DNA from: Phallusia mammillata
Lineage: Eukaryota
Length of the DNA: 64,000 nt
Assembly (NCBI GenBank): GCA_965637545.1
Contig: OZ281494.1
Coordinates: 11,718,001 to 11,782,000, forward strand
Direction of reading: 5' to 3'
Positions 23,557 through 62,726 of the stretch are shown piece after piece (position 1 is the first letter of the stretch; each line of letters starts with the position of its first letter). The translations under genes were made by a program, and so were the position numbers. The notes beneath the pieces were generated by a model, which saw only the letters and a list, made by a program, of their open reading frames with translations, was not told where the DNA came from and did not search any database.

Positions 23557-25091
23557 TCATACGTAATACTCTTTGTCCTTGTCGTGCTTTTGTGATTTGG
23601 CGTCCCTCTTCATTGAACCGTTTTTAATTGGTGTAACCGGTTTGCCTTTCTTCGGCATCGCGCCATATTGTCTTTCTCGCTCGTCAACGTTATACGTCAC
23701 GGAGTCCCGTTTTTTAAACCGGTACATGACGTAAAACAGCAAGAGCACGCAGCAAGCCGCCGCAGCTGCAATTCCCGCTATCATGGCTGTAGTAACGGTC
23801 GTAGCTTGGCCGATGTACACCGAATTCGTGACGTTTGACCCCACATCAACGGTGACGTCAAGCGGCGAAGATGACGTGTTACTGGTGTTGATGATGTTGT
23901 CTCCCATCGGCGAGATCGGAATCTTGATCCTCTTGGTCTTGTCTGGAGTCTGCGCACCGCCGCCGCTCCTCGTCTCTGTGACGTCATTGGTAACAAAAAC
24001 ACTCGGTAAAGGGGCTGACGTGGCACTGCTGTTGCTTTCGTAGGTGACAGAAAAGGCGGCAGGGGGTTGGGTCGACGACCGCCGGGGCGTCATTGGAGGA
24101 TTAGGCGGCGGTGGCGAGGAGGTGACTTTCGCCTGATCAAACCGGATTGAACCGGTTGAAACAGGCACCGAAGTGAGCGTCCTGTCGCTTCCCGCTGAGC
24201 CTGTCCAATCTGCCGCAGCGGTCGTGGGAATGGGGTAGGAGGGTTGTTGGTCTGTGTGTTCACCTGACGTTGCAATGGTGTTGGTAGTGGGTGGGGAAAA
24301 GAGCAAAATACGTGGATTACTTTTATGCGTGGAACTGTTCGGTTTGCTAACCGTGCTAGTGGTGTGTGTGTTGTAGTTTTGTGTTGTTTGAGTTGTGATA
24401 ACTGGTTTGGCATTGGGCTGGACGACCGGAGGATGCAATAAAGCTTCTTGGGTTGACTGAGGACTTGATGTTGGCTGTTCAGGCGTAGAGGATACAGATA
24501 CTGTGTTAGAAACCGAAGGCGTCGTGCTTGGTGGTTGTAATGTCGTTGGAAGTTTACTTGTTGAACCAATATGGACTTCTTGCGACGGAACAGGGTCTTG
24601 TGAAACTTCCTTTCGCGTAAAAAGATTAAGGATATCGCTGAGGCTTGCTTGAGAGGGAGGTGATTCAGATTCGGATTCGACATCAGTTTCGTCAAGATTC
24701 GATTCCTCGTAGGATTCAGGGCTGGTAAAAATGTCGACTATTTCATCAAAACCTTCCATTTGAACTTCCTCGACCTCTACATCTTCATCTGCGTCCTCAT
24801 ACACGCCCTCTTCCTCCTCATAATATTTTACGTCATCATGGGTGACGTCATCGACTTGGTCCTCGTCACCGTCCAGTGAATTGGTGGACGGAGTTTCATT
24901 TGTAAAGAAGCCGGATTCAATAAAGAATCGTTGAAGATCAGGTGCCAGCCCGTTGCCACCAGTTATGCCGTACTGCGCATGCGTGGTTGCCGGTGACGTA
25001 GCAGTGGTTGTTGTAGTTTTAGTGGTAGTTGATGTGATGACGTCATGTTGCTTTGCGAGGTTTGTGTCAATAAAAATCCCGGAGCCAGAAC
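23557..25091 (-). CDS. NRXN: Neurexin terminal exon (transmembrane isoform): SG repeats, acidic and Ser/Thr/Pro-rich stalk, TM, cytoplasmic tail
   Basis: Acceptor TTTTCAG|GT at 25092/25091 is in frame with ORF 23557..24804. TM segment MIAGIAAAAACCVLLLFYVMY; tail RFKKRDSVTYNVDE...KEYYV*. Confidence 0.93.
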
Positions 25092-28000
25092 CTGAAAATA
25101 TAAAATAACGGTAAGTTCGGCTGGTATAATATGATTGGGTTTTAAACGGTCTTGGTTTCGGTATAATTTTATGACAGTGGAACTTTCAACACATTTGTAT
25201 CTTGACAACTTAAGTACAGTATTATGCAGTACTAGCATTTTGTGTCCAAAACATATTTGCTTAAAGGTCAACGTAGAGTACGAAAACTGCCAATAGTTTT
25301 GCCAAGAGGATGTTTATTTAAAAGAAAGAAAATGTTTCAAGGGTTTTTTTAACAAAACACAACGACACACAACAAAGAATACTTACATTGTGCAATGCTC
25401 CAGATGTTATGTGTTAGCGTGTAAGCAAGCAAAAAAGAGTGAGGTTAAATCTAATTCATGGTATACACGAAATCAAGTTCTGTTTAACTGCGATGATATG
25501 TGCATAATATGTTTAATGTGTATAATATTTGCGTATGACCTGTCTTGTGAAGTGTAGCAAAAACTCTTAGTTTTGTGAACATGGCATACAATTTTTGGCG
25601 GCAGATGTAGTTTATTGCATATTTTTAGACTGGAAGAAACGAAAAATAAAAGCGGGTCTTGCGATCTTTTAAGACACGATAAATGTTAACGCTGAAATAA
25701 GTACTCCGTGTATCGCGAGAAGATGCCACTGCCGCATGGCGAGTGTGGCGCCATTGCAGCCTTGTTGTGAGAATGAGTAGACTGAAGTTGTTGTGGTGGA
25801 ATGTGGTTGGTTGTGGTGGTGATGGTGGTGGAATGGGAACAGAAAGAGAGTTGAGCGCACAGTTAGCCAAGTCGTAGTTTTATAGGTAGAAAGATTTAAG
25901 GGTATTGTATTCTAAATGTAACCACACACTGTGTATCCTAGAGTTCACTACAGACAGAACACAAACTGATACCTTTCTCCGAAAGCGTGTTGATGTTTGT
26001 TTCAAAATTTTTAAAAAAACTGTAGGAACCTTTAAAATTTTGTCAATTAGGTAGTTTTTTGTGGTATCTAGACATTATGTATGCGTTATCTTTTTCTGCT
26101 TCATCTGAATTTATAAACGAAAATTGACAGTTTCCACTTGACCTAATGATCATCCGGTAAATGGTAGCAGTTTGTGTTCTGGAAACTAGAACTAAGCGTT
26201 ATTGGTAATTATAACGCCAAATCACATTCTCCCTGGAGCAGATCTACTTTAAATTTATATTAAAGTTGCTATTTGATCTCACCTGATGAGTTTGGACACA
26301 TATCCTCGTCATCACAGTCGTCTGGATCTGATCCCTGTGGACAAAACAAAGATTTTTTATTCAAAACAGTCGACCCTTAAACTGTGTAATCTGCAATGTA
26401 ATAGGCGGATATCTTACAAACATGTGCTACTTGATCAAACTTATAAAGTACATTTAACATTTTAAGCAAAAAGATAACACGAATTCAGAGTTGCATTGGG
26501 CTTTTTTCCTGTATGTAGCACTATTGGATTTGGCCAGAAAAGATCAATATAAGCTAAATTTAGATGACCATTGGCAATTTCATTAAAAAACACAAAAAAG
26601 TGCTGCTGGAGTACATGTATGTGTTTGACATAGCAGCAAACTTACATTTGGAACGAACGGCGTTGACTTGGTTGTTGAAAAAATGGTTAATGTGGCCATG
26701 GTGGTGGTTGGTTGCGAGATGGTTGGATTGGTTGGTGAAATGTCAGGACCACCTATTTTCGTGACGTCACCATAGAACTGAACACGGTCGTCATCTGAAT
26801 AAAGCAAGGTGACAGAATCAGAATAACACATGACAAATGGTATAACTTCTGTAGAATCACATTTAAATCTTGTTCAAGTGGTCCAAAATAGTGTGTTTGG
26901 ATAAGATCGTTTCCATTATTAAGCCAACCGTTTAGAAACGTAGAGAATGTTAACCCTTCCTTCTTCATCGTACAAGTTTTGTACAACCATGGTATTTCTA
27001 GTTTATATTAGTAATTTGAAAACCTGTATGAAACCAAACTTCTCTGTTTCACATATTTTTTTATAAATAACGATGTGTGGGAATCTTCACTTCGACTTAT
27101 TAGCTATTTAAGTGAATTGCCCATATCGGAGATAACAATAAACTTACTTCTTGCTGCGAGATCGAACACACGAACATCGTTGAAGAAAAGTCCCATCATT
27201 TGACCGACGAAAGGTTGCGTGATATCTGGGGATCGTCTGTTGCGTGTTGGTTGTTGCAACGTGGACATGGCGCTCTCACTGAGCAATCCACCGATTTGAA
27301 TAGTAGATTGCGAGTTAAATACCGAAGCCACTCGCTCTGTTAGAACATACAAAGGTTTTGCCGTGCAAAGAATTGTTTTGCTTGGTTTTGGATAAATTAA
27401 CAACATTAAGTTTGAATGGTAGTTAATTGTTTAGAATTTTGCAACAGGACAAGGTTTTTACAAAGTGATTTAATTGAAAGTCAAATAAAAAGTTATACTA
27501 ATCAAAAAATAGACTAGTGCTATGGAAGATTTAGGTTAACTAACAAAATCGTAGAAAAAGTTCTTATTGTGGTTATACCTTGTGTTATTACTTCCATGCA
27601 TTATGTTAGTTGTTGGATATTAGAAACAAGTAACATGGATGAATTGTCAGTTGTGAAAGTACTGGTTAGTAGCTGAAAACACACACACGCTCTCACACAA
27701 ACAAACAGTACACACAATCATACACACATAATCGCGAGTTAGCCAAAACCAAAAGAAAAAATGTTAGTACCTTTGCCTTGCAACCACGAATCAACCGCGG
27801 GTCGGGCAGAGGGTGCAATGGACGGGCTTGCAAGGGCAAAGCGGGAACGTGCATCCCCTACGACAAATAATAGGCAGAGTGAGTTTCACACCAATGGCAA
27901 GACACGAGCAGATGTACACAAGTTGTTGTTAGTACACCGGTGCATTGCTGCGGCTCTTCATACTGATGTGTACCAAACTAGAAGCAGGTTGTCCATACTT

Positions 28001-31000
28001 TGTAGTAAAATACGTTCTAACCGATTAATGCTTTTGGGAAATAGTACAACTCATAGTTAATTGGTGTGGGTTTTTTAAAAGGTTCATGGGAGATCATGAC
28101 GTAAATGTTATAAATTTAACCCGATGGTTCCCAACCGCGGAGGAATTTTTAAAACTGTATGGAAGGAATTTACTTTATTTTGACATGTGGTTTGTAAATA
28201 GACACTTTAGCTCAGGTAATATAATCTGTGAGGTTGATTAAAGACCCAATTTTAAATGATATTTGTATGGTTCATCCACTATGTAGTCTATCAGGGAGAG
28301 ATGACAATATTTTGAATTGTTAAGGAAGGAATTCGTCGAAAAAGTTTGGGAACTACTAGTTTAACCTATTCATCTATGCAATTTCATTCGAATGGTGAAC
28401 GATAAATTACGTTCATTTTCTGTTACTAGTTGCTAAAACTCGTCATCATTGTATAAAACCAGCATCATGTGTGGTACGGGGTATTCCTGATGAACCCCGG
28501 CGGTCATGTTAGTAAAATGAATTCGTGCAAAGACACCAGTTAGAAATGTAATCACGGGTTATTTACCAAGTTGGATTCGGATAGTAAATGCACATGCAGT
28601 TTAATGTGACTTTGAATGCCAACCTATATCTCTGTACATTTTGCGAGTTTAAAGACATGCAAGACTGCTGTTGCATCGACCTGCCAATGTTAATGCGCTT
28701 ACTGACCAAAAATTGTTTTAAAAAAGATGTTTTAGTTTTAAAAAAGATGTATTCTCAGTAGGCTGAATCATAGCACGCCAGGCCTATTAAAGGCTATACC
28801 GAAAATCCCGGAAAGGCTCCTGTAGTAAGTTCGAATTTTTCTAGCTTACGCCTTGTCATATGGGAATGCTTGGAGACCGGCTGATTCCGAATAACACCCT
28901 CAATAGGCCTGGCGTACTTTGATTTATATATGATTGTGCCGTGATAGCTGGTCTGCGTTAATGTTTCAGGGCTGATCCCAGTTGTGAATTTATGTCCATC
29001 TTAACTTAGCAGGCAGATTTCCCATAATGCGCTCAATCGATTGGCAAGTTGATCAACAGCATGCATGAAAGTCACATATATTAGCAAACGATATTGCCCA
29101 AACCTATAAGTGCGATTTGTCGCGGACTGACATAGCGAACTACTTATTCAGCTAAAATACCTTGTTCTATGCTATATCGTATACCCCTGTAAGGTTACGA
29201 GTGTAAAGAAAACACATCACACAACAGCGCGTGTACTCACCACTAGGCGTAATACTTCTCACTGGCCAGTTGTTCACCCTCATCGTGGCATTGAGCCAAC
29301 GCCTGCGAACTTGTACAGTGTGGTAACTACCGTCCGACACCGACCTTTCTTCACGGAGTTCCACAGTTCGTCCGCCACCCACGTTAAAACGAAGCGTCAG
29401 TTTGCCATTCTCCTGCAGTTGCACCAGAAACAGTGTTACTGTGTTTATTGGTATGGTTGGATAGCGTGTTATTTATTATACAGTTATGGACAAATTGTGA
29501 AAACCATGCACCGATTTCACTCAAAACACATGCGCTCCTCGGTACCTCAGACCAGCTGTCCTAAGTTTCTGCGCAAAACCAGTGTCAAAAATGCATCCAA
29601 CTAACCCATTAGCCAGGGTGAAATGGCAACCGCAGGGGGTTGAATGTGTCAGAATTGACAATCTTGAGGCATTAACGCCGAAATGCAAATTCGCTCGCGT
29701 ACTTGGAATAGTTTATCGAACCAGATCTGGCATTCAACAGTGGGAAATGTTATTGATCTTTTTTTTAAACATATGCAAAAAGGTTAACACAGCGGTCCAT
29801 CGAAATACTGGCTTAAACTGAAGCAGAGAGTGGCAATCTTCTAGGATGTGCATGCAAGAATATGTGACTCGAGATTAAGTTCGAACCCATAGAATACTTT
29901 ACGATGCACCAACCAACGTATGAGCCGTATCAAAATTTTCATGTTTCGGGGGCATGTGGGTGAACCGCTGGGTCATTCGGGGTTAAACTTTGGGCGGATT
30001 AACTTCGGATAACTAACTAACATGTGTGAAATTTTAAATAATTTAAACCACTCTCTCTTGACCAAACGTTTGGAACAAATCAGCGCTGCACAGAAAAAAG
30101 TAATATTCTATAACTGTTCGTAACTAGGTTTGTTGATAATGTGCGCATCGACTTCTGGGCCGAGGACAGCGAGAACAGCACTTGAAAAAAACGCTTACCA
30201 AACGAAATGAAGGTTAGGCGACTCTTTTGCACACGATGAAATGTATGTACGACTTTGCGAGCCTTTGACAAACTTGTTAGCTTTCACACGCACACCCATA
30301 CACGCCCACACACACACACACAGACACACGCACACTCACACACAGAAACGTGGCATTCTCAATGCAAAATCTTCTGTTAGCGGCGCCAGCAAAAATAGGC
30401 ACTTGACGTGATCCAAAAAGAAAACGTTAAGTACGCTGTAGTTCTTAACCTGTGGGTAATTTGAAATTTTGCAGGAGGTAATTACGTCATCATACGTCAT
30501 CGTCATACTTTTGTGATGTTATAGTTAAGAGATTTTTGAAAAGGGACAAATGTACCTGTGGTTGCTTTCAAGGGTAACAATATTAAAAGGTTAAGAACCA
30601 CTGAGTTAAAAAAACGCGGGCTAAAAAATTGACAACTGTTTTCACACTGCGCCACCAAGCGACAAAATTTCTAATTTACTCTGTACGGCGTAAAGCCTGT
30701 TTTCTCCTAAAACAGGGAATATGACATAAGATCACGTCAAAAGCGCCTACCGCCGCAACTTATGCAAACCATGCATTAAAAACCGACAGGCATTAATACG
30801 ACGGCCAGCAACGCCGTGCAGCATGGAAACCTCCTTACAATGCTAAGCCGAAGGTAGTCTCGGGGATTGCGCATTGCCGAGTACACTGTAAGCAGGACGG
30901 CGTCGGGAGAGCGGCTCGCAAAGGCAATGTTCAGAACGTCATAACGTACGCTATGCCCAGAGAGCTCGCACGTAATGAGACCCTTGTTGAAGAGGTAGGC

Positions 31001-34000
31001 AGAAGAGCTTATGTGTTCTGATGGTGGGCACGGTGTTTGGCGTAAAAATAGAAACAATAGCACTTTAGATTAGGTAATATAACACTAAAACGGCTATTCT
31101 CAGTCCCCGGCAAGTGATTGTAATCTGTTCGCGACAGAAAGGCAAATTTTCAGTTCACCAAGGTTTCAAGTAAGGATGGCCTATTGTGTTGATCAAGAGT
31201 AAAAATTTGGAGCTCAGCAAATTGTTCGGATCTTTTACTTTTACAATATTGCCAAAAAAACTTTAAACGTCAAATTTTTTAGCGCAAATTTAAGAGAAGT
31301 TGTACCGGTAAAAACATGCACAAACCTTTGGTAAACTTTGGGCAATCTTGATCTTTTAAAACTTGAAATTCTGAGAACAAATGGCCGAGGGACTGAGAAC
31401 AATTTTCGCCGACATATAAACTCACGATAGAGAGTTGTAGATAGTCTTGAGTCGGCGGGTTTGTGTAACCGCTCACGCGCAAAAGCACACAATTGCGCAA
31501 CGAAGTCGAAAATCCGAGCCCCAGTTTATCAGTTCTGGTGCTCGGGTAGTCGTCACGCCATTTGTACAGTATTAAGCCTGTACCGGAGCCGATACGATAG
31601 CTATGGCCCTCTGTAAAATTCACATGTTATGTTACTTACAACGCCATTTAAGGTGTTGCCGATTTTGCGCCACATAGTCAAAGCTGTATAGCCCTTTTAC
31701 AACATGCCAAAAACTGAATTGATCGAGTTAGTACTCGTTTTGGATATTTTATGCCATCTTTTTAGAAAGTTTCAAATGGTTAGCCAATTAAATAGTTTTA
31801 GGCGTACCAACTTTAAAAATCATTATTGGCATTGTCAAGGCTATGCACAATCTGAAAACGTAAATAAACAGGGCAAATGTAAAATGTTTTATAAGTTCCT
31901 GGTGATGCTGAATAAAGAAATCATGCACGCCATGCATAAGTCCACCACACCATGCTTCAAATATGGAAACTGTTCATGGTGATAGGCAGTAACACTCTCG
32001 GGAGTTGAGCTTTGTATTATTGTTATTAAAATATATAGTATATTATGTTTTTATTTCCTGGTCTTGTAGCATTCGGAAAAGGGTCCTTGATCAAACAAAG
32101 CAAAAAAGCGCCTTTTCGGACGCACTGGTCACACAAATCAGAGCAAAAAATATGTGCGAAAACAAATGTTCGCTGTAGCGTGCGTTCGTTATCACGTGAT
32201 CAACGTTCGTATCGCACACCGCAAGCGGGGTGGGTGAAAAAAGAGGGGTCATGCTTTGAGGGGTGCACACGAGCGCTGCGCCCCGAAGCTGAAAAATCAC
32301 GGCACTCGTAAAAAGCAAAATGAAATGTGTTTGGTGACGAAAGGGGAAGGCAACACACTCGCTCTCCTTCGTTTGTTTTGCTTACCGGGTAGAGTACTGA
32401 CGTCTAAATCGGCCAGCAAATAAAAAGAGTTTCTTTTGTCGCTGAGAGTTATCACTATGTGCCGTTTATTTATATTTAATGCTGGACCAAAATATGCATA
32501 CACTGTATAGTAAGTATAGCGTGGGCTTCGTTTGAAGTCGGAAACATGACGTCACAATCAAGCTACGTCATCAAAAAAGTCTGACGTCATATCTCATCTT
32601 GTTTTACAAAAGAGTTTTATGGGAAGTACAGGCAAAATTGGGAGTTTAAGTATCCATTTACGTTTAAAGTATTTTTACGAAGGACGTCCCTAGTTCAAAG
32701 TTTTTGTTTAGCACTCTTTGCACTATTGTGTACGCGTTTAACTGTTTTCAGAATAATTTTGTAATCACGCATAAATAAAAGCGAACCAAAAACTTACGTT
32801 GCTGGCAGAGTCGGCCTACGTACGACGTGAGGCTACAATCACATTTAAACCCGTCCCAGTGTTGTATGCATACTCCACCATTACTACAAGTGGTGGGAGT
32901 ACAAGCAGGTGATGGTTCTGTGCAAAAATAAAGTACACGTTCAAATTGACACCATCTAACCTTTTTGGTCCTAGGAAAAAAGATTATAAATAATGAAAAC
33001 TACCCCTCCACCCCAAAAAATCGTTTTCACAACACCCAAAATGTAGGTTTATTGCTTGTATGAGCAATCCTGGTTAGTCGGTCTTACTGAGCAAAATAAA
33101 CAGCAGTTTTATTACTTACTTAAGCACCCAGGGTTAACCTTTCCAACTGTTTGTTTTCCTCTTGGATCTCTCATATCCTGACTGACCCCGTTGACCTCGA
33201 GTGACCCCATGCAGCCTTCATATCCGGTCCTGGATGCCACTCTGTCTGGCAATTCGTATTGGTACATATTACCGGGGACGCCACCAATGTAAAATTTTCC
33301 TGCAACAAGGATACGAGTTTTTGTTTGGAATATAAACGAGTAATAAAACTGTTTGAGGTAAAAAAAAAGTCTTGTTTGTTAATAAGACTGTGTTAAACAT
33401 TCTGTGGACATTTATGAGCAAGTTTTTCGGAACGTTTTGGAAGCCACAAAGTTGCTACGATATTCCTATTGATTTACCGAACCACTTAGTTTTTTCAGCA
33501 TTACTCATAAGTGTTTTACAACCTTACAAAAGAATTTCTTCGATAACATCACTGTTTTAGTCTCAAAATGAAGGCAAACTGTGTTTTATTTGTGCTGTTC
33601 TGTTCTAGCATGAGAACATTATAATCGATTTCATCGTGGCAGTTTTGTTTGAAGGTTTAAATAAAACCTCTTAATAAAATCCACATTTGCCTACATATTA
33701 CTGTTATAAAGATATTAACCTTTCTTACCGCCTAAATCGAGGTTCTTATTGCCAACCCGTCCACCTTGAATGACTTGCTGTTTGTCGACTGTGAGGGTGT
33801 GGATGTTATCTTCCGAACGTTCAATGCGAATGTCGTGCCACGAATTGTCGTTCACCAACAAATCACCGTTTACTGTCAGAACCTTTACAAGAAAAACGAA
33901 TATAAGTTATATGGTTTAAAACAGAGGTTGTCAACTTATGGTAAAACTACTCCCAAGTAATTAATCTGGCATGCTTTGTGGTGAGTATAAGTAACAAAGA

Positions 34001-40000: not shown

Positions 40001-43000
40001 ACGCCACAAGGTACCCAATTCAACCGCACAAACCGTGCTCATCAACCCGCTTTGAAGATACAACAAACGCTCAGTAGCGATTTGCATTTATTCATGCGAG
40101 AGACAGAATCGCCCCCGATTACCCCTTGAAATCAATAGGGGTCGTTCACCCATTCAGCTACGGCCCTCAATTTGTCGAAAATTTTGGCAGCGGCGGTTCG
40201 ATTCACCAACAGACCACGTGACATTCGATTCGTTACGCTTCACTGCAAATTGTGTACGCACAAATGCGTCTGCAACTATAAGGAATAAGCAGCGTATTGA
40301 ACAGATGATTTAATCCCATTGGAAGATATGTTGGTATTAGTAAGGCTTTTATGTTCACTGATTTGCGCAATTTAAACGTATTGATTTGGCTGTCAGTATA
40401 AATATCAGTTTCTCACTAATGGAAGATGATAGTGCTGTCGTCATGTCAAAAATGTGTAAGCTTTGGGGGAAGAATTAGGCGCTGTGAATTAATTACAATG
40501 AAAAGCAAAGATTCGCTGAATAAATTCGTTGAAAAATGGATTCTTACATTCCCAAGGAAACAAACAATTTGGGATTTTAAACCTTATTGTTTTCGAAAGT
40601 TTTCTATCAATAAAACAAAAAGGCCACCCTTATACCTTTTTGACAATACACTAAACTTTAAATTTAAGAATTAACGTAAAAAGTTGGAATCAACCACATC
40701 TAAAAAGCAATGGAAAATCACACTTACTTCCTTTGTGCCTTCCGTCAACTCCAAAAGTGATCCTGTGTCCTCTCCTGGTCAGTTTCACACTGTGCCACTT
40801 CCGGTCATTCAACATAGTTTCACTGTACATGGTATCCGGTCCACTACCTGTTTTGCACGCACAAAAAACGTCACACTGGTTCACTTCCAGCCCAAAGCCA
40901 TTTACGTGCTATCGATATGTGCGTAATCATCAATTAGAACCATGATACAAGCTTGTTACGGGTTATTAATTTTCAATGAAACATAGAGCAAGTCAAAAAA
41001 AATTTTTTTTTAAGTTGTTCATAAAATGTTGTGTTGTAGTCTATGCGTTCCTTTACAGTTAGTCGGTCACTATATAAATGATTTTACTTATGCGTGTTCG
41101 TGTGCTTGTGACTTTATGTTCTTTTTTAAACCATGGATAAGCATGTAATTATGCAACTGCGCATTCTATGATACTACTGCAGTTGTTAACACGATTACAA
41201 CATGCCGAGCGCGGAGGTTCCTCTGTATATGTAACTAATTCTTAACTTATGTAAGTACATGGTTAACACTTAAAATATGCAAAAGGTGATGACCAAAAAA
41301 CTCGAATTTGGGTTAAGGGTGAACCCATTTCATAAACTTGATGGAAAAGGTTATGTTTTCAAAGAATGGTTAAAACATAAGGAATCCTTTTTGATCTTCG
41401 GAGCGTGGTAGCCATCCATACTCTACTTACCGTCTTGCTAACGTGCAACCAGGTTAAAACAGTACATTTCTAATCATGGCCATTCAATGGGGCCGGTGCC
41501 TGCGTCGCGGCCAAGTTTGTCACGTGACCAAAGGGACAACACAACAATGGTAATGACGTGAAACACAAAACACAGTAAGTGGTGACGATGATGTGCAAAG
41601 GCGACTTACGAGGTGCGGTGCAGTTGGGTTGAGAACAGTCTGCGCAACAAAAAGATAACCAAGTCAAAATTGCCGAACCAGCAAGTGTCGCTGATCAACC
41701 CTTAAAAATTTTCATACGACCGTCATTTAAACGACGAATTTTGACAGAGAAGTTTAGGAAAGATCTAGAGAGTTAGAAAATTGACTGCTAAAAACACATT
41801 GCAGGTGTTAATTTATAGTTGCTGGTCTGCCTTGAGCTTCTATTGTTCAGGTAAAAGCGTATGGAATTTAAGCATAAATGTTACTGAAATGAAGGTTTTG
41901 AAAAAAAAAATCTTTCTGACGTACACATAACTTGGCATACTTTCCACTAACGGTAAATTCAACACTCATATACAAAAACAAATATAATCAATTGACATTT
42001 TCTTCACGTAAAAAATAACAATTAGTGATACGGGATGGCTAACTCGGTGCTGTAAAATAGTACAAAGCCGAATAGAGTGGTTTTGATTGACATGTGGCCT
42101 ACCGAGATCGATGGTGAGTTTTAGCCTTCCTCCTTCCATTTCTATTCTCATCATATCTCTAGTGCTCCTGGATACAGTGGCAAACAAAACACCTGCAAGA
42201 AAGAAACGGTGATGACCTGATGTAATCCCAGCCCTACTTCCAATGCCTTTCTCATTAGATGCTTTTCAAAAGTCCAGTAAAATTTTAAAACAAAGAAATT
42301 TGTTTGATGGAAGTAGAAAAACAACTTAAGTAAACGTTGAAAGGGTTTGTCAAAAAAATAATGTGCTTGGTGGGCGGAAATGCAGATGAATGCTTGTTAT
42401 GAATCACTGCGACCGGTAGGAAGAACCGGTCGGGCATCTTGTGCAAAACTTATGACTCACGCCTATGCTTCATTCAACACTTGCGATATTCTAAAGATAG
42501 CAAAACTGAGTTACATAACCTTTGCAAAATGGTTACGGCACAAGCTTTGCGAAATCAATCACAAATTGGTTACAAAAGCATGCAAACATTGTTGAACCTT
42601 CCCGAAAAGGCATTCACAGGCATCTTGCTGATGCGAAACTCATTTTAAAAACTTTTTATTTTCACCAAATGGTAATTGTTGGCCTAACAAAACAATCATC
42701 GAAATCGTATTGGGTCCAAAACAGCCATATCTTTTTACTTTTGGGCATCTAACAAACGGATCAAGAGGCATCGGGACCTATTAACTGTACACTACAAATA
42801 ATAATGATTGACCTGCGGCTTACCTGACTTAAGAGGAGTTTTAAATCTCATCGAAATATCTTCTCCGTCAGTTTGTATGCTTTTCTCCATCTCAAAACCC
42901 ATGTACTGCGTTCCGTCAAAGGTTGCTGACATCACAGCTGTCAATCAAACGAGAAATTTGATTTTTCAGCGAAATAATTTATCGATTGCGAAGGTGCAAA

Positions 43001-46000
43001 TAGTAACACCTGGCACCTGACAGCTGTTTGAGCCAAGGTGTATAGGACCACATAAAGCATTGTGCCCGACTTTTGCTTTTTAATTCCAAAGCAATTTTTT
43101 CACGAACTAAAAATTCTTATTGAGCCTTAATCTGGTACATATATCGTTTTACGTAGGTACCACAAATAATATGTAAATGAATATGATTCATAAACGTTCC
43201 TAGAAAATCGATTACTTAGAAAAGAGCGATTGTAGAAAGTTTGCCTCCTGATTGTTCGTAAATTTGCTCTTTTCTTTCAGGAATTTGCTCTTCTCTTTTC
43301 GATAAGCTTGCCGTAATCACTAAGTTTACCATTTGTTTATTTGTTACGCACAGTAAAACTACGGAGACTGTCTGTTCAGGTGGTACATTGTATTATTACA
43401 ATGAAAGAAAAAAAAATGTATCCCCCAAAAAATAAAAGCCAAGCACTTCACCAACCATTTTCACACGTTTTTCCTCTGTAAGAAGTATTGCTGCAGTCGC
43501 ATATGAACCGGTTCATTCCTTCTGTGCATCTGGCTCCGTTCATACATGGATTCGAGGCACATTTACTGCCGTCAAGTCCTCCACAAAAAGCTGTGATGTC
43601 ACCAGAGCCGAGCGACGATGGTCCCATGTTTTGTCCAGACGATTGGGCCAAAGACTAAACAAAAAAGTTCTTTAGTAAAAGGGACGATGTTTTGATTTGT
43701 AATCTCCCTGGCAACAAGCAACATCCACATTGCACAATTATGGAAATTGGAGTTGTTGTTTGTTTTGTTTTTCAATATAAAGGATGCGGTTTGGGAACCA
43801 TTTGTTAAAAATATATAGGGTCGTTTGGGATGCTTGACAAAAAAGCATTAGAGCCAGGGGTGAACGTCCAGGTTTTTATCATAAACACATTGGATTTGGA
43901 TTTAATGGAATTAATCGGAGTTATCAAGTTATCCAAACTATTTCTAATCTTCGTTGTGAGGAAAACCTTCGAAACAAGTTTGTCTTGAGCCAACCAAGTC
44001 TTGTCTGTGCTAATAGTGATATCTTCTCAGCAATCAACGAACAATGAAAGTATTTAAGCTTTATCAAGTGCGTGTCTCAAAGCAAATTTGCCCAAACGGA
44101 TAACGCTTGAGAAAAGAACCAATCTACACGGTTGGTGTACCAACACAAACCCCCAAGTTTATCACCGGTTTCTGAATTCGCATTCGTTACCACGTTAAAC
44201 CTGTCAGTATGTGTCGTGTTTCACCAAAAAATATTGAGGTTGTATCCGTACAAGGTATGCGATGTTTTTATTTTAATCTTGGTTGGTATCTTAACATCTG
44301 AATCGCATTCATTATAACCTTCCCTTAGAGTCACCTGCTGAATTTTAGCAATCTTTTTACGTTGCAATTATTCACTTTAGTCAGTCCAAGTAATTTGGGA
44401 CACTATGGACTAAAAACACAAAGAAGTGATATCACTCAAATTTCCTTGTCGAAAATAAGAGGCATCAATGGAATTTAACGAAACCATGTTACTAATCTAT
44501 CATCTTTGTCGGCATGGAAATTGGGACTTAAGAGTATACCTTGAAATATGATGTACACATGTTGAGTGGAGGGCCATGAAGATGCATGCACTGCAAACAT
44601 AGCAGTGTGGCCATCTTAACTGTAGACGCTGTGACGAGGCCGGTGGCCAGCGGTGGGGATAAATCCATTGTAATCAAATTGCCCTTACAAAAGTACTGCC
44701 TACAGCTGTATATTAAACTGAACCAACCACAACCTGCAGATAATGTCAAGAGGTTTCAGAGGTGGACAGCTAATGAAGTTTTTGACTGAAATGTCGTTGT
44801 TGTTTTTTCATTTCTCCACTCGAAAAGGCCGAAACAGTGTTGAAAATAAATCGATACTAAGAATCCGGTTTGACATAATTCAGAATGCTTGTCGGGATTT
44901 TCTTATTTTTAGCATGACAAAAAGGCGTAGCCCTACCCGTATGATAAGATAATTGCTGGTTTGCAAATCGTATTTATTGTTGCAAGAGTTAAGTTTTTAA
45001 CAGACAAATTACCCCCAAAAAGGCAAATCTTCAAATGCTTCTGAGTAAAGTAAAACATTTTTTGCATATTCTATTTTCTGCTACAATTGGGCGTACACTT
45101 AAAATGTAACTTTAACTGCATATTGAAACTCGTTTTTGACAAATAATACAGAAAACTTTAAGTCGAAGAAAGGAATTAATCACCCAAAATAAGGCTTAGT
45201 TATCTATACATGCACTTTAAATGTGTTGCCTGTGTCATGTTATTATTGGCCAAATTATTTCTTATCTAATAGCGATAAGCGTCACCGTCGCTTTGGCAAA
45301 GGATTATGTCATTAATAGTGATGTGATCGGCTTAACCTCACCTGATACGCACTGAAATACTACGGAATCTCTACTCTGTAAACTGAAGCATTTTCGAGCG
45401 CTAAGTTGACAGAAAAATCCAACAGGGATTTTTTACAACTTAACTTACGACTTGCAATATTATCGCTTTCTACTCCTTATGCAAGCAAACATCATTGAAG
45501 TTTTAACGCTAATTTTTACAGCAAACCGAAAGTTTTCCCTGTTCAATGATACCAAATCTTACTTAAGCGAACCTCCAAGACTCAAGTAGCTGCTGAAAAT
45601 TCGCATTCACTTAATACAACACTTGCAATTTGCGAAGATCTGGTTTTGGTTCTACCTGATCGATACCAATTAGCGAGCATTTAGAATAACCGCAAGAACC
45701 GACATTCACGCTGATCGTTTGTGTTTAAAACCAAATAAAATAGATTTGATTCGGTGCTGCAAAGTTGCAGACTCTAAATTCTGCGCTAAGCTGACAATGG
45801 TCAATCAAATAGAATCTATATGTCAACTTAGGACTTCACAAAAACGAAATCATTTTCATTTAAAAAATGCAGCATATTTTGTCATATCAATCAACCCTTA
45901 AAGACTTCCGTTACGTTGGTTCTTTATTGTTTAAAAAAACGTCGCCAACCTAGTGCTGTCTTGTAACCGACTTGTTATATTCGAAATCAAATATAAGTAC

Positions 46001-58000: not shown

Positions 58001-61000
58001 TCTAAGAACGGTAGACACCAAACGAGACTGAATAAAAAATAATATGCTTATAAATCTGTTTGTTAAGCATTAAAGCTTGCAATAGGCCTAGCATATTGGT
58101 TTCATTTTCCATGAAGCTTTTGGGAAAATCTATAATAAACAATCTTCAAACGCACTCCAAATAGTGATATTCTCATGACTTCAAAATAACTTGCAACAAA
58201 GATTTACACATTATGTAATGTATAAGTTATTACCCGGTTTCTTCCGATGAGTCAACTTTTCGGAAAACGAGTTTACCGTGACATGAATAGCTATACCTTC
58301 AGTTTTGCTAATTGTACTATTAACGATTAGCAAAACTATACCCGTAGTCATTAACTATAAACCAAGTCTCAGGAGACAATGCATGGTAAGCAGTTACACT
58401 TATACGCCACGGGAATCGATCCCACGCCCGTGCCAACTTGCGTTCCTAAAATTATCCGTATCTCCCCCAGAGAGCCGTGTTTTCTAAATGTAAGCGCGAT
58501 GTCTTCATACCGCTGCCTCGTTGATTGAAGTTACGAAGTTGTTGCCAGCTGAATTAACATACAGTCGCTTTTCAGAAAGGTCCGAAAGGTTTATGCCCTT
58601 GACTTGTGAGTCAGCAACCTACATAGGTTAACGATTGCGGTCTTTGTGGATTTGTTTGATCCTTTGCCTTGACAGTTTTAAACACTCCTATGCGCTACTT
58701 GAATCCAGTCAACAGTAAAACACATTTAACAAGGCATATAAATCTTTCGCTGTCGCCGATTTAACAGGATTTAAATGTATTCATTGTGAATTGTGATTTT
58801 GTGAGGTTTAAAAATCAACTTTAAATGTGATTGACTTACCAACGGAACAGTTTTACACATGTCTAACTATTTGATTCCACTCAAGCAAAAAAACATGTAA
58901 CCATAACCATTTGATTTGCCTCTGTCATGGAACACGATCTAATGTTTTCGTTGTAATTCAGTAATGGAGGATTCGGAAAAAGGAGGTTTAAATTTGACTT
59001 TAAACGTCATGGGCTCGCCACAGGAACGCAGTAAGCAAATTCCGATGTGAGTCAAAGCCATGTGATCCTGCCAAGTTCGCTTACAATGCTCAACTCTCTA
59101 TTAGCCTTGGGAAAACTTAAACTTTGCATTTTGAATTGGAGCTTTTAAAAAAGCGAAAGAATCGATCAATGACGTCCCGTGACAATCGCTTACGTCATAG
59201 CCCCCGCGGGATGATGGCAAAATAATGGAAAAGCTGAAATTGCCAATCAATGACTGCAACCTTTGTCGTAGTACACAAGCTAGAGATTTACACTCGACAG
59301 ATCATTGGCCCATAAACTCTACATACACGATTTCTTCACTATTGATTGAGAAAAATGCAATGTGCGCATGCGCAAAGCACACAAACATAAAGTTACCTGC
59401 CAGTCAAAAGAGTAAATTTTAATCGTACTGCACCAAATGAGTCTAGAACTCTAGATACACGTAAAAAAAGTAATTTGCCGTTCTTTAACTTTTTTAACTT
59501 GATTTGTTTTTCGTATTTGATGTATATGTTTCAAAGAGACAACAAACACATTAAAAACCTAAGAATAGCTCGTTAAATGATGAAAATGTCTATGTCAGTA
59601 AAATACTACTTTTCCAGACCGCTGGTGACCAGAACACCGGAAGAGCAATTACAGACCAGTCCATATATAAAAGATGTTCTTACAAGTCGGCTCGCTTTTA
59701 TCCTTGGAGAAATACATTAAAGCTATCAGTTTCGAGAATGTAAAGGGACAGACAGTCGAGCACAAAATCGCATTCTTAATATCTCTGAAAGCGACCTTAC
59801 GACCCGGGTTGTCGAAATCCCAGATGATCGACATTCGATACAGCAGTGACGTAGCAATCCAAACAGCGCGATTGTTTTGCCGCTTAACCCTATAATAAAC
59901 GAACAGTAATATATATTATGGCATATTGTAAGCAGTTTCAAAAGCATATAGATCCAACCGAAATTTGTTTTGTTTGGTTATAATAAAACATTTTAATCAC
60001 GTTTAATGTTTTTTATTAATCGCCTCGCAGTATTTTGGCAGTTGATTACACTTCATTGTGTTGTATCAAGTATAATAGAAACGTCACCCTACCCAATCGT
60101 ATGATTTAACATAGCAAATACACCACCGTGGTTTGCATCAATTAAAATGACCCCGTAACCACCTCAAAGAGTAATGTTCGCCTTTAGCAAATATAGTTCT
60201 TGTTACTTTACTTCAGCGGTTTAGCGTTTCACAAATATAGTCGACGACGTTACTACAAAGCATTGAGCAAGGTCACGTATGTTACACAAGAAAATTTTAC
60301 CAGAACACACACTTAACCTATTCCAGTATTGCACCAACGAAAACACACATACATATGCTTCTATTATACGTTCAAGCGTTCTACTTTACATGTCCTTCGT
60401 TATCGCTGTCCTTTTTAAACAAATATATTACATCATAGCATTAGCTTTTTAAGGCATTACAATGTAACGTAGCTCAACGTAGCTCTAAAGTCTAAACAAA
60501 ACAGTTACAAAAAACTTTGTACAATTATAAACGTTTTATATGCAGGTAAACGCCTTATTAAATCCTCACATTTTTAGCTTTAATTACCATATTTAGATGC
60601 ACAAGATGTTTAATATATGTAATAAGTTGAAATCCTTGCATATGCTTCAAAAGAACATGACGTTTAATTACTTTTAAAAGTAGGCCCAAAGTGATTTGCG
60701 CAGAAGAATGTATTTTGTTTTCCAAACAGAGAAATCTTGATTTTAAAATACAGTACAAATATCAACAGTATTAAGTCACATTTACTAAATGAGAAGATGT
60801 CTTTGAACGGATGTACGCTATATGATATGAGATGTACAGCACAGCAATACACGTTCGGGTGTTAGTGACCAATATACGATGTCAAATGGATGAGATACAC
60901 ACAAGTGATTATTGTGGGACAAATAACAGTGACCTTACCTGCGGGTGCGTCCGCCATCATTAGCTGGCCTAAAGCTTTTAGCCAATATCAAGCAATGTTA

Positions 61001-62726
61001 TTATTGAGCAATCATAAGCAACATAAATGCACAAATGCCAGGCACATGAAAAAAATTGTTGGTTATAGTTAGACGATTTTACCTAATCCTGTTTCGTTAA
61101 AAAACTAGAGTTTGCTTTAATCAGTGAGAGAATAACATTATTGGTGATATTTTCATTACGACACGAAATCGTTGCAATCGGCCATACTTTACATAACTAA
61201 TTATAACGTAATAGTCAAAGTTAGGCAGTTTCATGAACTATTGTGAGGCGTGTTTCTTTGAACGTTCTGTTATTATCATTCAGGTGCATGTCATGCCAGT
61301 GAAGAAACTTCGTTCCAGGCCAGCATAGCAGTGTAGGCAAGATGCAATTATATGCTAATCGAAGCATCCATAATAATCATTCTCTTATATGCATCACAGG
61401 CTGTGCATTGATATAATCGCATCTAAACACACTGTTGATGTGACAAACTACTCACGTTCTTCGCAATATTGTCCGGCGAATGATGTCCCGGAACAATCGC
61501 AAGAGGTGTCCTGGTCGCTGACGTAACACACACCGTTGTTCTGACACGGGTTTCTAAGGTGGCAAAACAAGCAAGTTACCTATATACTAGGTTTCAACTA
61601 CAAATAAACATCACAAAAAACATTGCTAAATGCTCATAGCGACATACTACATATCTCTCTCAACGAATCCGGTTAATCGAAATCTGTCTGATAGCAGATT
61701 TCGTTTTATGCATACAGATCCCAAATTGAGGAGCATTATTAGCCGAAAAACGTTTCGATTAATTGCATAGCATTTTTCGCGTAAACGTAAGAAAACTCTA
61801 CATACAGGTGTTACCCTGATGAAGGTGTTTCGTATGGGACATCGAAACGTTGGCATATTAGAACAAAAAAAAGGCCGGAAGAGCTAAAAATTTTGTTGAT
61901 ACAGGTGTTGTTATTGACCAGGATGGGGCCTAAAGCCAGTGTATCCACCACCAGGCCTTTTATATTGGTACAAATATTACCTGAATTCGGTACAAGCATC
62001 GTCCAATGTCTGTTCCAGCACATCATACTTGCGCACGGCTGATACGTATTTTCCGTTGATAGAAATTTGCCGGACATAGCCACTGAATCGGTTTTCAAAA
62101 AACACAGAAGGCAGGGCAAGCTGACTAATCTCGTAACCTCCAGTCAAGCCACCAAAAAATGTTGGAGTAGTTGATATTAGGTCCTGCCCCTCGCCTCGAA
62201 CAGACTGGGATGTTACGTTCCCGTCAACTGTAAACCGTACAGAGGGAAAAGACTTCTCGACTTGCACTGTGTGCCATCTATTGTCGTTCATGTTGTTGCC
62301 TAAAGTTAGAACCACAGTTCTTGGTAGGCCAAACTTAAATCGAAGTCGCAGGGAACGCTGGTACAAAGTAATTGCGATAAAGCTTGAATCACCGTCGTCC
62401 AAGTACATCAGAAATGCATCGCCCAGTTTAGTGCGAAATTGAAAAGACAAAGCCATGTTTCCGTCTATCGGCGTTTTCCAAGTTGGAAATTCAGCGTATT
62501 GTCCAGTGTTGCCGGAAAAATGGAACGTGGTCATTCGGACCAAGTCGCCGGCTATCAAAGAAGAGTTACCCGAAGGCGTAAAGGTTTGACGCTGGGGTCC
62601 AGTGACGGATAAGGAGAGTTCGGAGTCCAGGTCCCACGCACCGAATGATGACGTCACTATGGTCGAGAGCAGCACCAAAATCAGGCAGTCGAATCGATAC
62701 CATATAGTTAAACTTCTTGGTGTCAT
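23557..62726 (-). CDS. NRXN: Alpha-neurexin (signal peptide, 6 LNS, 3 EGF, Cys-loop, mucin stalk, TM, PDZ motif KEYYV); 25 core exons, about 1863 aa
   Basis: Core exons, 5'->3' on minus: 62726-61981, 61553-61456, 57530-57390, 55161-55001, 51455-51291, 49872-49651, 49495-49388, 49182-49063, 48339-48175, 43654-43456, 42937-42824, 42192-42103, 40847-40728, 34983-34848, 34623-34498, 34297-34153, 33882-33729, 33299-33120, 32917-32798, 31610-31426, 29412-29241, 27336-27148, 26794-26646, 26334-26283, 25091-23557. All are GT-AG, phases are consistent, total 5592 nt. Hallmarks include GKSADFVSL, NFVGCLKE, PSTRTDKL, DYLQLSI, VFNSQ, CDDEDMC and C-terminal KDKEYYV. Confidence 0.95.
25669..25781 (-). CDS. 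NRXN: Candidate alternative terminal exon (SS5 position) encoding a GPI-anchor-like signal
   Basis: Phase-1 acceptor CTTCAG|TC gives ...CPNSS-VYSFSQQGCNGATLAMRQWHLLAIHGVLISALTFIVS*. Branch point CTAAC at 25866-25862; AATAAA on minus at 25616-25611. Confidence 0.7.
27771..27857 (-). CDS. NRXN: SS4-equivalent cassette exon (87 nt)
   Basis: TTTGTCGTAG|...|GTACTAAC, phase 1-1, encodes GDARSRFALASPSIAPSARPAVDSWLQGK. Similar to the vertebrate SS4 insert and in the same intron. Confidence 0.85.
28122..28358. mobile_element. hAT-type MITE (about 237 bp)
   Basis: Degenerate TIRs CGATGGTTCCCAACC / GTTTGGGAACTACTA. TSD ATTTAACC / GTTTAACC (7/8). Confidence 0.75.
28764..28926. repeat. Inverted repeat / small MITE-like foldback
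   Basis: Perfect 14-bp arms ACGCCAGGCCTATT (28775-28788) and AATAGGCCTGGCGT (28902-28915), extending outward with few mismatches. Confidence 0.65.
30285..30345. repeat. Imperfect (CA)n tract, (UG)n on the neurexin transcript
   Basis: CACACGCACACCCATACACGCCCACACACACACACAGACACACGCACACTCACACACAG. Confidence 0.85.
30436..30603. mobile_element. Short hAT-type MITE (about 168 bp)
   Basis: TIRs CTGTAGTTCTTAACCT / AGGTTAAGAACCACTG. No clear TSD. Confidence 0.65.
30839..31017 (-). CDS. NRXN: Duplicated LNS6 N-half exon B (mutually exclusive with 31610-31426)
   Basis: CCATCAG|...|GTAAGG, 179 nt, phase 1->0. Encodes HISSSAYLFNKGLITCELSGHSVRYDVLNIAFASRSPDAVLLTVYSAMRNPRDYLRLSI, collinear with exon A. 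Confidence 0.85.
31808..31937 (-). CDS. Candidate beta-neurexin-like alternative first coding exon
   Basis: ATG at 31937 opens MHGVHDFFIQHHQELIKHFTFALFIYVFRLCIALTMPIMIFKV. A phase-1 donor G|GTACGC follows, compatible with either LNS6 exon. Confidence 0.4.
32386..32502 (-). other. Candidate exon between EGF3 and LNS6 (117-nt in-frame cassette, or 5' exon of an internal transcript)
   Basis: TATACAG|...CCCG|GTAAGC. Phase 1-1 and stop-free: LYAYFGPALNINKRHIVITLSDKRNSFYLLADLDVSTLP. Confidence 0.4.
32545..32592. promoter_or_regulatory. Cluster of CRE/ATF-like sites (possible internal promoter)
   Basis: Two full TGACGTCA sites and one TACGTCA half site within about 45 bp, directly upstream (minus strand) of the candidate internal exons. 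Confidence 0.35.
33922..34085. mobile_element. Degenerate short hAT-type MITE
   Basis: CAGAGGTTGTCAACTT ... ATTGGAAAGCCACTG. Shares GGGTAATTT with the 30436 element; TSD only partial. Confidence 0.45.
39247..39731. mobile_element. hAT-type MITE (485 bp)
   Basis: TIRs CAGGGGTGCACAACCT / AGGTTGTCCACCCCTG. Perfect 8-bp TSD CTCTAGTC. Confidence 0.92.
41610..41639 (-). CDS. NRXN: SS3-equivalent cassette microexon (30 nt)
   Basis: TTTTTGTTGCGCAG|...|GTAAGT, phase 1-1, encodes DCSQPNCTAP; compare vertebrate SS3 DCIRINCNSSK. Confidence 0.88.
50261..50306. repeat. 23-bp tandem duplication
   Basis: TACCGTGTGGACTTTTTAAGATG x2. Confidence 0.85.
53676..53705 (-). CDS. NRXN: SS2-position cassette microexon (30 nt)
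   Basis: TCCATCACAAATACAG|...|GTAAAG, phase 0-0, encodes KGDAVGPSST. It lies in the LNS2 intron equivalent to vertebrate SS2, but there is no sequence similarity. Confidence 0.6.
60939..60968 (-). CDS. NRXN: SS1-equivalent cassette microexon (30 nt)
   Basis: GCTTTAG|...|GTAAGG, phase 1-1, encodes RQLMMADAPA; compare the vertebrate SS1 segment LAHLMMGDQG. Confidence 0.85.

Follow-up and report, generated by a model that had tools for sequence, protein, structure and literature searches.

Among the molecules proposed to encode synapse identity, neurexin splice variants are a leading candidate, and such a code is usually treated as a vertebrate feature. A stretch of 64,000 nucleotides from the ascidian Phallusia mammillata (contig OZ281494.1, positions 11,718,001 to 11,782,000 of the forward strand; hereafter the window, in whose numbering all Phallusia coordinates are given) raises the question of whether one invertebrate neurexin gene already carries the splice choices of its vertebrate relatives, and how old these choices are. 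A first-pass annotation had read positions 23557 to 62726 of the window as a single neurexin gene with six binary choices, namely the splice sites SS1 to SS4, two versions (A and B) of an exon in the LNS6 domain, and a transmembrane (TM) versus a glycosylphosphatidylinositol (GPI) anchored end, with possible beta forms in addition.

The explanation that we favour, and consider likely with good confidence, is that the locus holds one alpha-neurexin gene, the counterpart of vertebrate NRXN1-3 from before their duplication, with splice sites matching the vertebrate ones, an SS5-type module at its 3' end, and ascidian additions. The pre-mRNA would be diversified by alternative splicing at these sites. 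Judging from vertebrate neurexins, inserts in the loops of LNS2, LNS4 and LNS6 would alter ligand binding, and the splice choices taken together would change both ligand binding by these three domains and the anchorage of the protein in the membrane. Direct RNA support in Phallusia is limited to SS4 skipping and the 3' module.

Identity of the gene and exon model

The gene lies on the minus strand and reads from an ATG at 62726 to a stop after ...KDKEYYV at 23557, in a window that contains zero N. Pfam places Laminin_G, EGF and Syndecan domains in the minus-strand open frames of this interval, and comparison of the first open frame with the Protein Data Bank (PDB) gave bovine neurexin-1-alpha as the best match (3qcw, 2.4e-42), all six LNS domains being matched. 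A representative protein search with exon 1 as query returned as its top match CAB3264446.1 (E 4e-187, 1654 aa; also A0A6F9DN92), deposited as 'neurexin-3-like [Phallusia mammillata]'. The spliced walk of this protein along the window comprises 30 exons with all introns GT-AG, and the rebuilt model translates to 1654 aa, 1652 of which are identical to the deposited protein (the differences being T484I and G1109D). Going by this sequence evidence, the interval from 62726 to 23557 is the alpha-neurexin locus of P. mammillata, and the earlier claim of one neurexin gene here holds, with the 30-exon model, the near-identical deposited protein, the domains and the PDB match behind it. It begins with:

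61981..62726, minus strand: exon 1, with start codon, signal peptide and LNS1; 100% identical to CAB3264446.1 residues 1-249, Laminin_G_2 at 4.7e-22, GT donor

The ectodomain is of the alpha type, (LNS-EGF-LNS) three times over, as can be deciphered from the Laminin_G and EGF matches and from six stretches that match 3qcw, and full-length alignment with NRXN1-3 spans 79-97% of the query. At the C-terminus there is a single Syndecan-type TM segment and short tail, and the ...KDKEYYV ending is the PDZ-binding motif as in vertebrates. The product would thus have an ectodomain of six LNS and three EGF domains, followed by a glycosylated stalk, a single membrane-spanning helix and the EYYV tail. 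No second Phallusia neurexin turned up in these searches, the genome itself not having been searched for another copy. Scans of the gene region for tRNA (ARAGORN) and Rfam families gave no match.

All the elements named by the first-pass annotation (SS1, SS2, SS3, LNS6 A/B, SS4 and the open reading frame (ORF) with a GPI signal) are present in the window, and its coordinates were correct for SS1, SS3, SS4, exons A and B and the GPI ORF. Its figure of 64 alpha isoforms is arithmetic and not an observed number, and it leaves further sites uncounted: a microexon of 18 nt, and the last exon with its three acceptors.

Cassettes at the vertebrate splice-site positions

The exons concerned are as follows.

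60939..60974, minus strand: SS1 cassette, 36 nt (PLGQLMMADAPA), between EGF1 and LNS2; included in CAB3264446.1
53676..53705, minus strand: SS2 cassette, 30 nt (KGDAVGPSST), in a loop of LNS2; included in CAB3264446.1, at the same position as vertebrate HSGIGHAM
41610..41639, minus strand: SS3 cassette, 30 nt (DCSQPNCTAP), in a loop of LNS4; included in CAB3264446.1, junctions checked
32386..32403, minus strand: microexon, 18 nt (HVSTLP), between EGF3 and LNS6; included in CAB3264446.1, present in Ciona and Clavelina
27771..27857, minus strand: SS4 cassette, 87 nt (GDARSRFALASPSIAPSARPAVDSWLQGK), in the LNS6 loop, donor G/GTACTAAC (the slash marking the exon border); RNA inclusion joints and vertebrate alignment

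Alignment with vertebrate isoforms that have or lack the inserts places all four cassettes, as had been claimed, at the vertebrate positions on the domain map, and all cassette lengths are divisible by 3, such that the frame is preserved as in NRXN1-3. SS1, SS3 and SS4 resemble the vertebrate inserts in sequence as well: LGQLMMAD of SS1 aligns to the vertebrate motif G(L/F)AHMMM(G/A)D (e.g. GLAHMMMGD), DCSQPNCTAP of SS3 to DCIRINCN, and the 29 residues of SS4 to the 30 of the vertebrate SS4 insert. The differences from vertebrates are that three genes stand there against one in Phallusia, and that the SS2 insert is unrelated in sequence. SS1 also has a second AG 6 nt downstream, giving a 30-nt version (60968-60939).

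Arthropod neurexin-1 models (P0002, P0007, P0016, P0412) carry an insert of 9-10 residues (e.g. ISSGTSFCR) exactly at the SS2 position, and the SS2 loop of LNS2 may be a recurrent insertion point. A further variable site of LNS4 lies after ...VDG...., at the boundary of exons 16 and 17 (40728/34983; an intron of 5.7 kb in Phallusia), where optional inserts of 7-19 residues are carried by Clavelina X5 and X7, Ptychodera X8 and Asterias X3, and by none of the Phallusia or Ciona models.

Only inclusion of SS1-SS3 is seen in Phallusia, from CAB3264446.1, the stretch examined with RNA (25020-31019) excluding all three sites; their alternative use in this species would follow from the Ciona and Clavelina annotation described below.

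Alternative use of SS4

RNA contigs from four runs of three studies (X1, X2, X3 and X17) were examined on 25020-31019 only. Runs that contain 40-48% of the words of 21611-31610 behaved as RNA, and the four gave CT..AC joints at every constitutive intron of the examined stretch, with depth 0 inside those introns. SS4 inclusion joints were found in runs X1, X2 and X3, and the exon-25 side only in run X17. In run X3 there is in addition a skipping joint (27336->29241) at depth 7.8 versus 27.6, and the contigs of this run break exactly at the SS4 borders, beside a separate skipping contig. On moderate evidence, the pattern is an alternative-splicing bubble in which SS4 is skipped in about one fifth of the transcripts of that sample. 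The binary choice at SS4 is thereby seen in Phallusia RNA, both forms occurring in one run.

The end of the SS4 exon and its donor, ...AAAG/GTACTAAC (window 27763-27771), are identical in Ciona (fetched locus 23204-23213). The donor GTACTAAC is non-consensus and embeds ACUAAC, the motif of branch-point-binding and STAR-family proteins. Of the intronic sequence flanking SS4, Phallusia and Ciona have nothing else in common. Clusters of regulatory motifs that had been pointed out around the cassettes are indeed enriched in Phallusia, namely ACUAAY (3 copies within 300 nt) and GU repeats on the downstream side of SS4, and YCAY (10 copies within 150 nt) ahead of the GPI-type exon X (empirical tail 0.002-0.009), but none is enriched at the matching Ciona positions, and they were rejected as conserved regulatory motifs. 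Vertebrate SS4 is regulated by KHDRBS proteins (Sam68/SLM), which Ciona reportedly lacks (PMC3636136), and for that reason the regulation of SS4 must differ from that of vertebrates.

Three short intronic spots in the RNA-examined stretch (28020-28219, 28820-29019 and 29820-30019) reach a summed RNA-contig depth of up to 368. Their contigs continue into unlike sequence, and a tRNA-like GGTTCGAATCC motif stands at one loose end; the spots probably represent dispersed repeats that are transcribed from other places.

The 3' module

The strongest new point of the analysis lies at the 3' end of the gene, in three exons.

26283..26334, minus strand: exon 29 (GSDPDDCDDEDMCPNSSG), the Cys-loop exon, with a donor that serves as SS5-type branch point; aligns to vertebrate ECPSDDEDIDPCEPSSG, seen in RNA
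25387..25781, minus strand: exon X, ORF VYSFSQQGCNGATLAMRQWHLLAIHGVLISALTFIVS and stop, predicted acceptor at 25781 and GTAAGT donor after 25387; ORF and acceptor from sequence, donor joint in RNA
23557..25091, minus strand: last exon, with three nested in-frame acceptors, then TM segment, cytoplasmic tail and EYYV; RNA contigs, Syndecan-type TM/tail domain

From the donor of exon 29 at 26283, four continuations were found in the RNA contigs, three into the last exon (25091, 24263 and 23975) and one straight into the intron. Acceptor 24263 is the one used in CAB3264446.1, while 25091 would lengthen the stalk of that model by 276 aa and 23975 would shorten it by 96 aa. The joint from exon 29 to 25091 was seen in run X2; loose ends at 26279/26283 that match GEHTDQQP mark acceptor 24263 in runs X1-X3, and others that match ETRSGGGAQ mark 23975 in all four runs. 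The optional segment 24264-25091 starts with SGSG and holds an acidic, Tyr-rich stretch (YYEEEEGVYEDADED), and the shortest form turns NSSG into NSSE, such that the choice of acceptor would change the length of the stalk as well as the residues after NSSG. This stalk-length choice was not counted in the earlier list of binary choices.

Exon X follows directly on the Cys-loop exon. Its ORF opens at a phase-compatible AG (25781) and ends at an in-frame stop (25671-25669), with AATAAA at 25616-25611, 50 nt beyond; the encoded peptide has small residues (C-N-G-A) and then a hydrophobic C-terminus, the last 18 residues having a mean hydropathy of 1.9. These are the features of an AS5-type exon. The donor of exon X, AAT/GTAAGT after 25387, is joined to acceptor 25091 in runs X1 and X3. 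Inclusion of exon X would replace the TM segment and PDZ-binding tail by a lipid anchor, or would lead to secretion.

The layout can be compared with the AS5 system of mouse Nrxn3 (Hauser et al. 2022, PMC9275415; Ushkaryov and Sudhof 1993). Exon 24 of the mouse gene has a stop codon and a GPI signal, mRNAs containing it proceed to acceptor 25a and mRNAs skipping it to 25b or 25c, and its product, long taken as secreted or degraded, proved to be GPI-anchored (Hauser et al. 2022, PMC9275415). Phallusia appears to match this arrangement in its optional exon with a stop and GPI-type signal directly after the Cys-loop exon, in a last exon with three nested acceptors, the first of which is joined to the donor of exon X, and in the transmembrane forms with differing stalk lengths that result from skipping. 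It differs in that the entry splice was unseen in RNA and the GPI signal is predicted from sequence.

In another account, Phallusia would make no GPI protein from the locus: read-through from exon 29 would stop the protein at ...NSSGEIK, three codons on, yielding a secreted ectodomain or an unproductive, decay-prone mRNA, with the 25386-25092 intron in its 3' untranslated region. The RNA contigs speak for it: from 26308 to 25387 they are unbroken, at about 25-30% of the exon depth against depth 0 in the neighbouring introns, and no joint from 26283 to 25781 was found in the four runs; the Ciona Ensembl model F6WKV2, too, reads on beyond NSSG. Against it stand the small residues and terminal hydrophobic run of the ORF behind 25781, and counterparts that are spliced in as coding sequence in two other ascidians, namely Ciona isoform X13, with a short hydrophobic C-terminus after ...NSS, and Clavelina lepadiformis CAK8680222, which ends in the GPI-like tail ...NSGRKYAPRGGNSSFCCKYSSGPLLISWLALCYFLF. 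Mouse exon 24 was itself first thought to give a secreted or decayed product, and read-through and GPI forms could coexist. We regard the account as possible but rather unlikely, and prefer the reading that the GPI splice is used alternatively in Phallusia, as the Ciona and Clavelina annotations suggest. The TM versus GPI choice of the first-pass annotation thus stands as to its architecture, its ascidian counterparts and the 25387->25091 joint, but not as to the entry splice.

The duplicated exon of LNS6

The first half of LNS6 is encoded twice.

31426..31610, minus strand: LNS6 exon A, 185 nt, encoding this half in its vertebrate-like form, with PSTR kept; used in CAB3264446.1, seen in RNA
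30839..31017, minus strand: LNS6 exon B, 179 nt, a duplicate encoding an alternative form of the same half; intact ORF with AG and GT borders and the phase of A

Both lengths leave a remainder of 2 on division by 3, and the two exons together (364 nt, remainder 1) would shift the frame, so the reading frame permits only one of them; including both or neither breaks it. Exons A and B are 41% identical within Phallusia, and between Phallusia and Ciona the identity is 57% for B and 51% for A. The second LNS6 exon of Clavelina has the same position but 27-32% identity, and is not clearly orthologous to B. Equal-phase duplicates encoding the same part of a binding domain are known from the tandem exons of arthropod Dscam1, the differences being that Phallusia has only two copies, that their exclusivity would come from the frame, and that the intron between A and B (408 nt in Phallusia, 140 nt in Ciona) is too long for steric exclusion.

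Where exon A keeps the vertebrate PSTR motif, B has (H/R)SVRY, and in the alignment of the B-type segment with 3qcw a Tyr lies opposite the Asp of ...RVDSS.... In the neurexin-1-beta/neuroligin structures, some of the contact with neuroligin and one Asp that serves as a calcium ligand lie in this half of the domain, and exon B probably changes the specificity of LNS6.

In all four RNA runs exon A is joined to exon 25 (loose ends at 29412). Exon B has zero contig depth in all of them, and the contigs at the exon 25 acceptor all continue into A, an absence that is weak evidence of non-use because contigs lose rare variants. The A/B choice is accordingly upheld for the intact, same-phase duplicate and for its alternation in Ciona isoforms, whereas B itself was unseen in the Phallusia runs; its alternative use here is suggested by the Ciona annotation. 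In run X1 the contig ends at the 5' end of exon A, the exon next after the microexon, which would fit a branch point there.

Possible internal starts

A vertebrate-type beta-neurexin had also been envisaged, started from a promoter and first exon inside the gene at 31808-32592, just before LNS6. The interval holds the microexon and one fitting ATG ORF (31937-31808, 43 aa), with a hydrophobic stretch and a phase-1 GT donor that suits exon A. Neither Ciona nor Clavelina has a counterpart of this ORF at the corresponding place, the only conserved element of the intron being the 18-nt microexon, and a search from LNS6 to the C-terminus among proteins of 285-906 aa returned vertebrate beta-neurexins only and no ascidian beta-like protein. 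The candidate was rejected, and a beta form of this kind appears very improbable. Likewise, a gamma-like ORF running from exon X into the last exon was ruled out, as its open stretch has no ATG.

A different internal start is probable in the intron before the EGF2 exon.

44540..44668, minus strand: candidate alternative first exon (MDLSPP...TLLCLQCMHLHGPPLNMCTSYFK), phase-0 GT donor; cross-ascidian conservation

The only conserved non-exon block between the gene and the Ciona locus falls here (44624-44535, 70% over 90 nt, E 3e-9, blastn). The predicted peptides are MDLSPPLATGLVTASTVKMATLLCLQCMHLHGPPLNMCTSYFK in Phallusia, MDITVQSATSASSVTVQITTLLCLQCMHLHGPPLNICTNYFK in Ciona (fetched locus, about 14206-14332) and MDNVGQDGIQGKSRVTLKMATLLCLQCLHLHGPPLNMCSSYYK in Clavelina (about 17130-17257), with the shared pattern ...TLLCLQCMHLHGPPLN.C..YFK ahead of the donor. 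ATG, frame and donor are kept in the three species, each with AAG/GT in phase 0, the phase of the EGF2 exon, and the nucleotide differences by codon position (4/1/17, 1/2/14 and 5/3/12) fall mostly on the third. In Clavelina an in-frame stop lies shortly upstream, with no in-phase AG after it, and the exon is on this account not an internal cassette.

Exon 44540-44668 was found in none of the protein models examined, and its N-terminus is weakly hydrophobic and weak as a signal peptide. It is probably an internal alternative first exon, from which a neurexin of EGF2-LNS4-LNS5-EGF3-LNS6 would begin. Like the beta and gamma forms, such a product would be a shorter neurexin started inside the gene; it differs in that the exon sits before EGF2, whereas beta forms start before LNS6 and gamma forms before the stalk, and in that LNS4-6 are kept.

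Annotation in other ascidians and the literature

Orthologous genes of Ciona intestinalis and Clavelina lepadiformis have the same alternative elements as Phallusia, including LNS6 A/B and a GPI-like terminal exon, and the window and both loci agree in the order of exons, which runs from the microexon through A, B, exon 25 and SS4, and further on from the Cys-loop exon through the GPI-type exon to the last exon. Ciona RefSeq isoforms X2-X11 and X13 were aligned, from a set X1-X13 with XP_026689388-99 among them. SS1 varies in X4, X7, X9 and X10; SS2 is skipped in X5, SS3 in X8, the microexon in X6 and SS4 in X11; and LNS6 is built with exon A in X3 and X6 and with exon B in the rest, as also in the newer XP_078483417. 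Clavelina isoforms X1-X9 show skipping of SS3 (X4/X7) and SS4 (X6), the second LNS6 exon, a short-stalk form and an extra LNS4 cassette (19 aa). The species differ in that one model is deposited for Phallusia, in the sequence and number of the Ciona SS1 exons, and in the extra cassette of Clavelina.

Of the published record, Uvarov et al. (2014, PMC3933685) reported that Ciona and lamprey have an AS4 exon, which they did not find in fly, worm or sea urchin; Ciona expressed sequence tags were without AS4 skipping, and the origin of its alternative use was placed in early vertebrates. According to a 2022 review, invertebrate neurexins (fly, worm) are not reported as extensively spliced or as having beta forms (PMC10084454). 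For tunicates, our literature search returned no paper on SS1-SS3, LNS6 A/B or GPI forms, and none that names both neurexin and Phallusia. All six choices are thus already isoforms in Ciona RefSeq, and most of them in Clavelina, while publication extends only to the Ciona SS4 exon. This limits the practical novelty, RefSeq having such isoforms for two ascidians besides Phallusia.

Several observations weigh against a splice code in use in Phallusia. CAB3264446.1, the sole transcript model of the species, includes all four cassettes along with exon A. SS4 skipping is absent from three of the four RNA runs, and in the remaining one the joint is a single short contig with 29 letters on its shorter side, marked 'between: not known'. 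The runs are coded, with tissues and stages not given, and their long unbroken contigs (4324 nt in X2, 3805 nt in X3) suggest that upstream of exon 25 a single form dominates. For Ciona and Clavelina, the isoforms are taken as RefSeq annotates them, from computed models. Together with the silence of exon B and of the 26283->25781 splice, these points favour an account in which the cassettes are constitutive, exon B and the GPI-type exon are unused relics, and one alpha isoform is made, the code existing only in the automated annotation of other species. Against it, exon B and the GPI-type ORF retain open frames and splice sites in both Phallusia and Ciona, along with their positions, which Clavelina shares, despite only about 48% protein identity overall. 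The broken contigs of run X3 with their separate skipping contig also go against it, and an absence from contigs, which lose rare variants, counts for little. We hold this account to be improbable. The interpretation of the locus as a splice code is hence sustained by the vertebrate-like architecture and by the isoforms of Ciona and Clavelina, and falls short as regards a chordate age, the beta exon, and RNA for exon B and the GPI entry.

Age of the splice code

Much of the code had been proposed to be ancestral to chordates, and this could not be upheld. Phallusia is a tunicate, of the sister group of vertebrates, and sharing between the two therefore dates a feature to the tunicate-vertebrate ancestor. 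No SS2, SS3 or SS4 insert was found in the protein models of B. lanceolatum NRXN2, Ptychodera, Glandiceps, Asterias, Holothuria and Haliotis, the amphioxus absence being that of one protein model and not of genomic DNA. Arthropod models have no SS3 or SS4 insert, and that at the SS2 position is unrelated. SS1 is variable in Ptychodera, Asterias and Holothuria isoforms in its position, not in its sequence. The C-terminus (window 23557-23571) reads EYYV in tunicates and vertebrates and EWYV in the amphioxus, hemichordate, echinoderm, mollusc and arthropod sequences examined.

It is a supported reading of these comparisons that SS1 (as a sequence), SS3, SS4 and the AS5 module are ancestral to tunicates and vertebrates. 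Features not described in vertebrates would be ascidian additions: the same-phase pair of LNS6 exons, the 18-nt microexon and, probably, the internal first exon before EGF2. A joint history of both may be put forward more tentatively, as plausible though short of probable: most of the vertebrate kit (the SS1, SS3 and SS4 inserts and the whole AS5 module) would have been pre-assembled in the single gene of the tunicate-vertebrate ancestor, before the vertebrate genome duplications, and ascidians would then have added the mutually exclusive LNS6 pair, exchanging the ligand-facing half of that domain, and an internal promoter exon before EGF2, for a 'short alpha' form with LNS4-6.

Significance

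The ascidian larval nervous system has about a couple of hundred neurons. If SS1, SS3, SS4 and the GPI/stalk module predate the split of tunicates and vertebrates, as is suggested here, this part of the code becomes testable in a small larval nervous system with a single neurexin gene. The ligands LRRTM and neurexophilin, whose binding is tied to these sites in vertebrates, are reportedly missing from non-vertebrates. These reported absences, along with that of KHDRBS, raise the question of what the ascidian inserts bind and what controls them.

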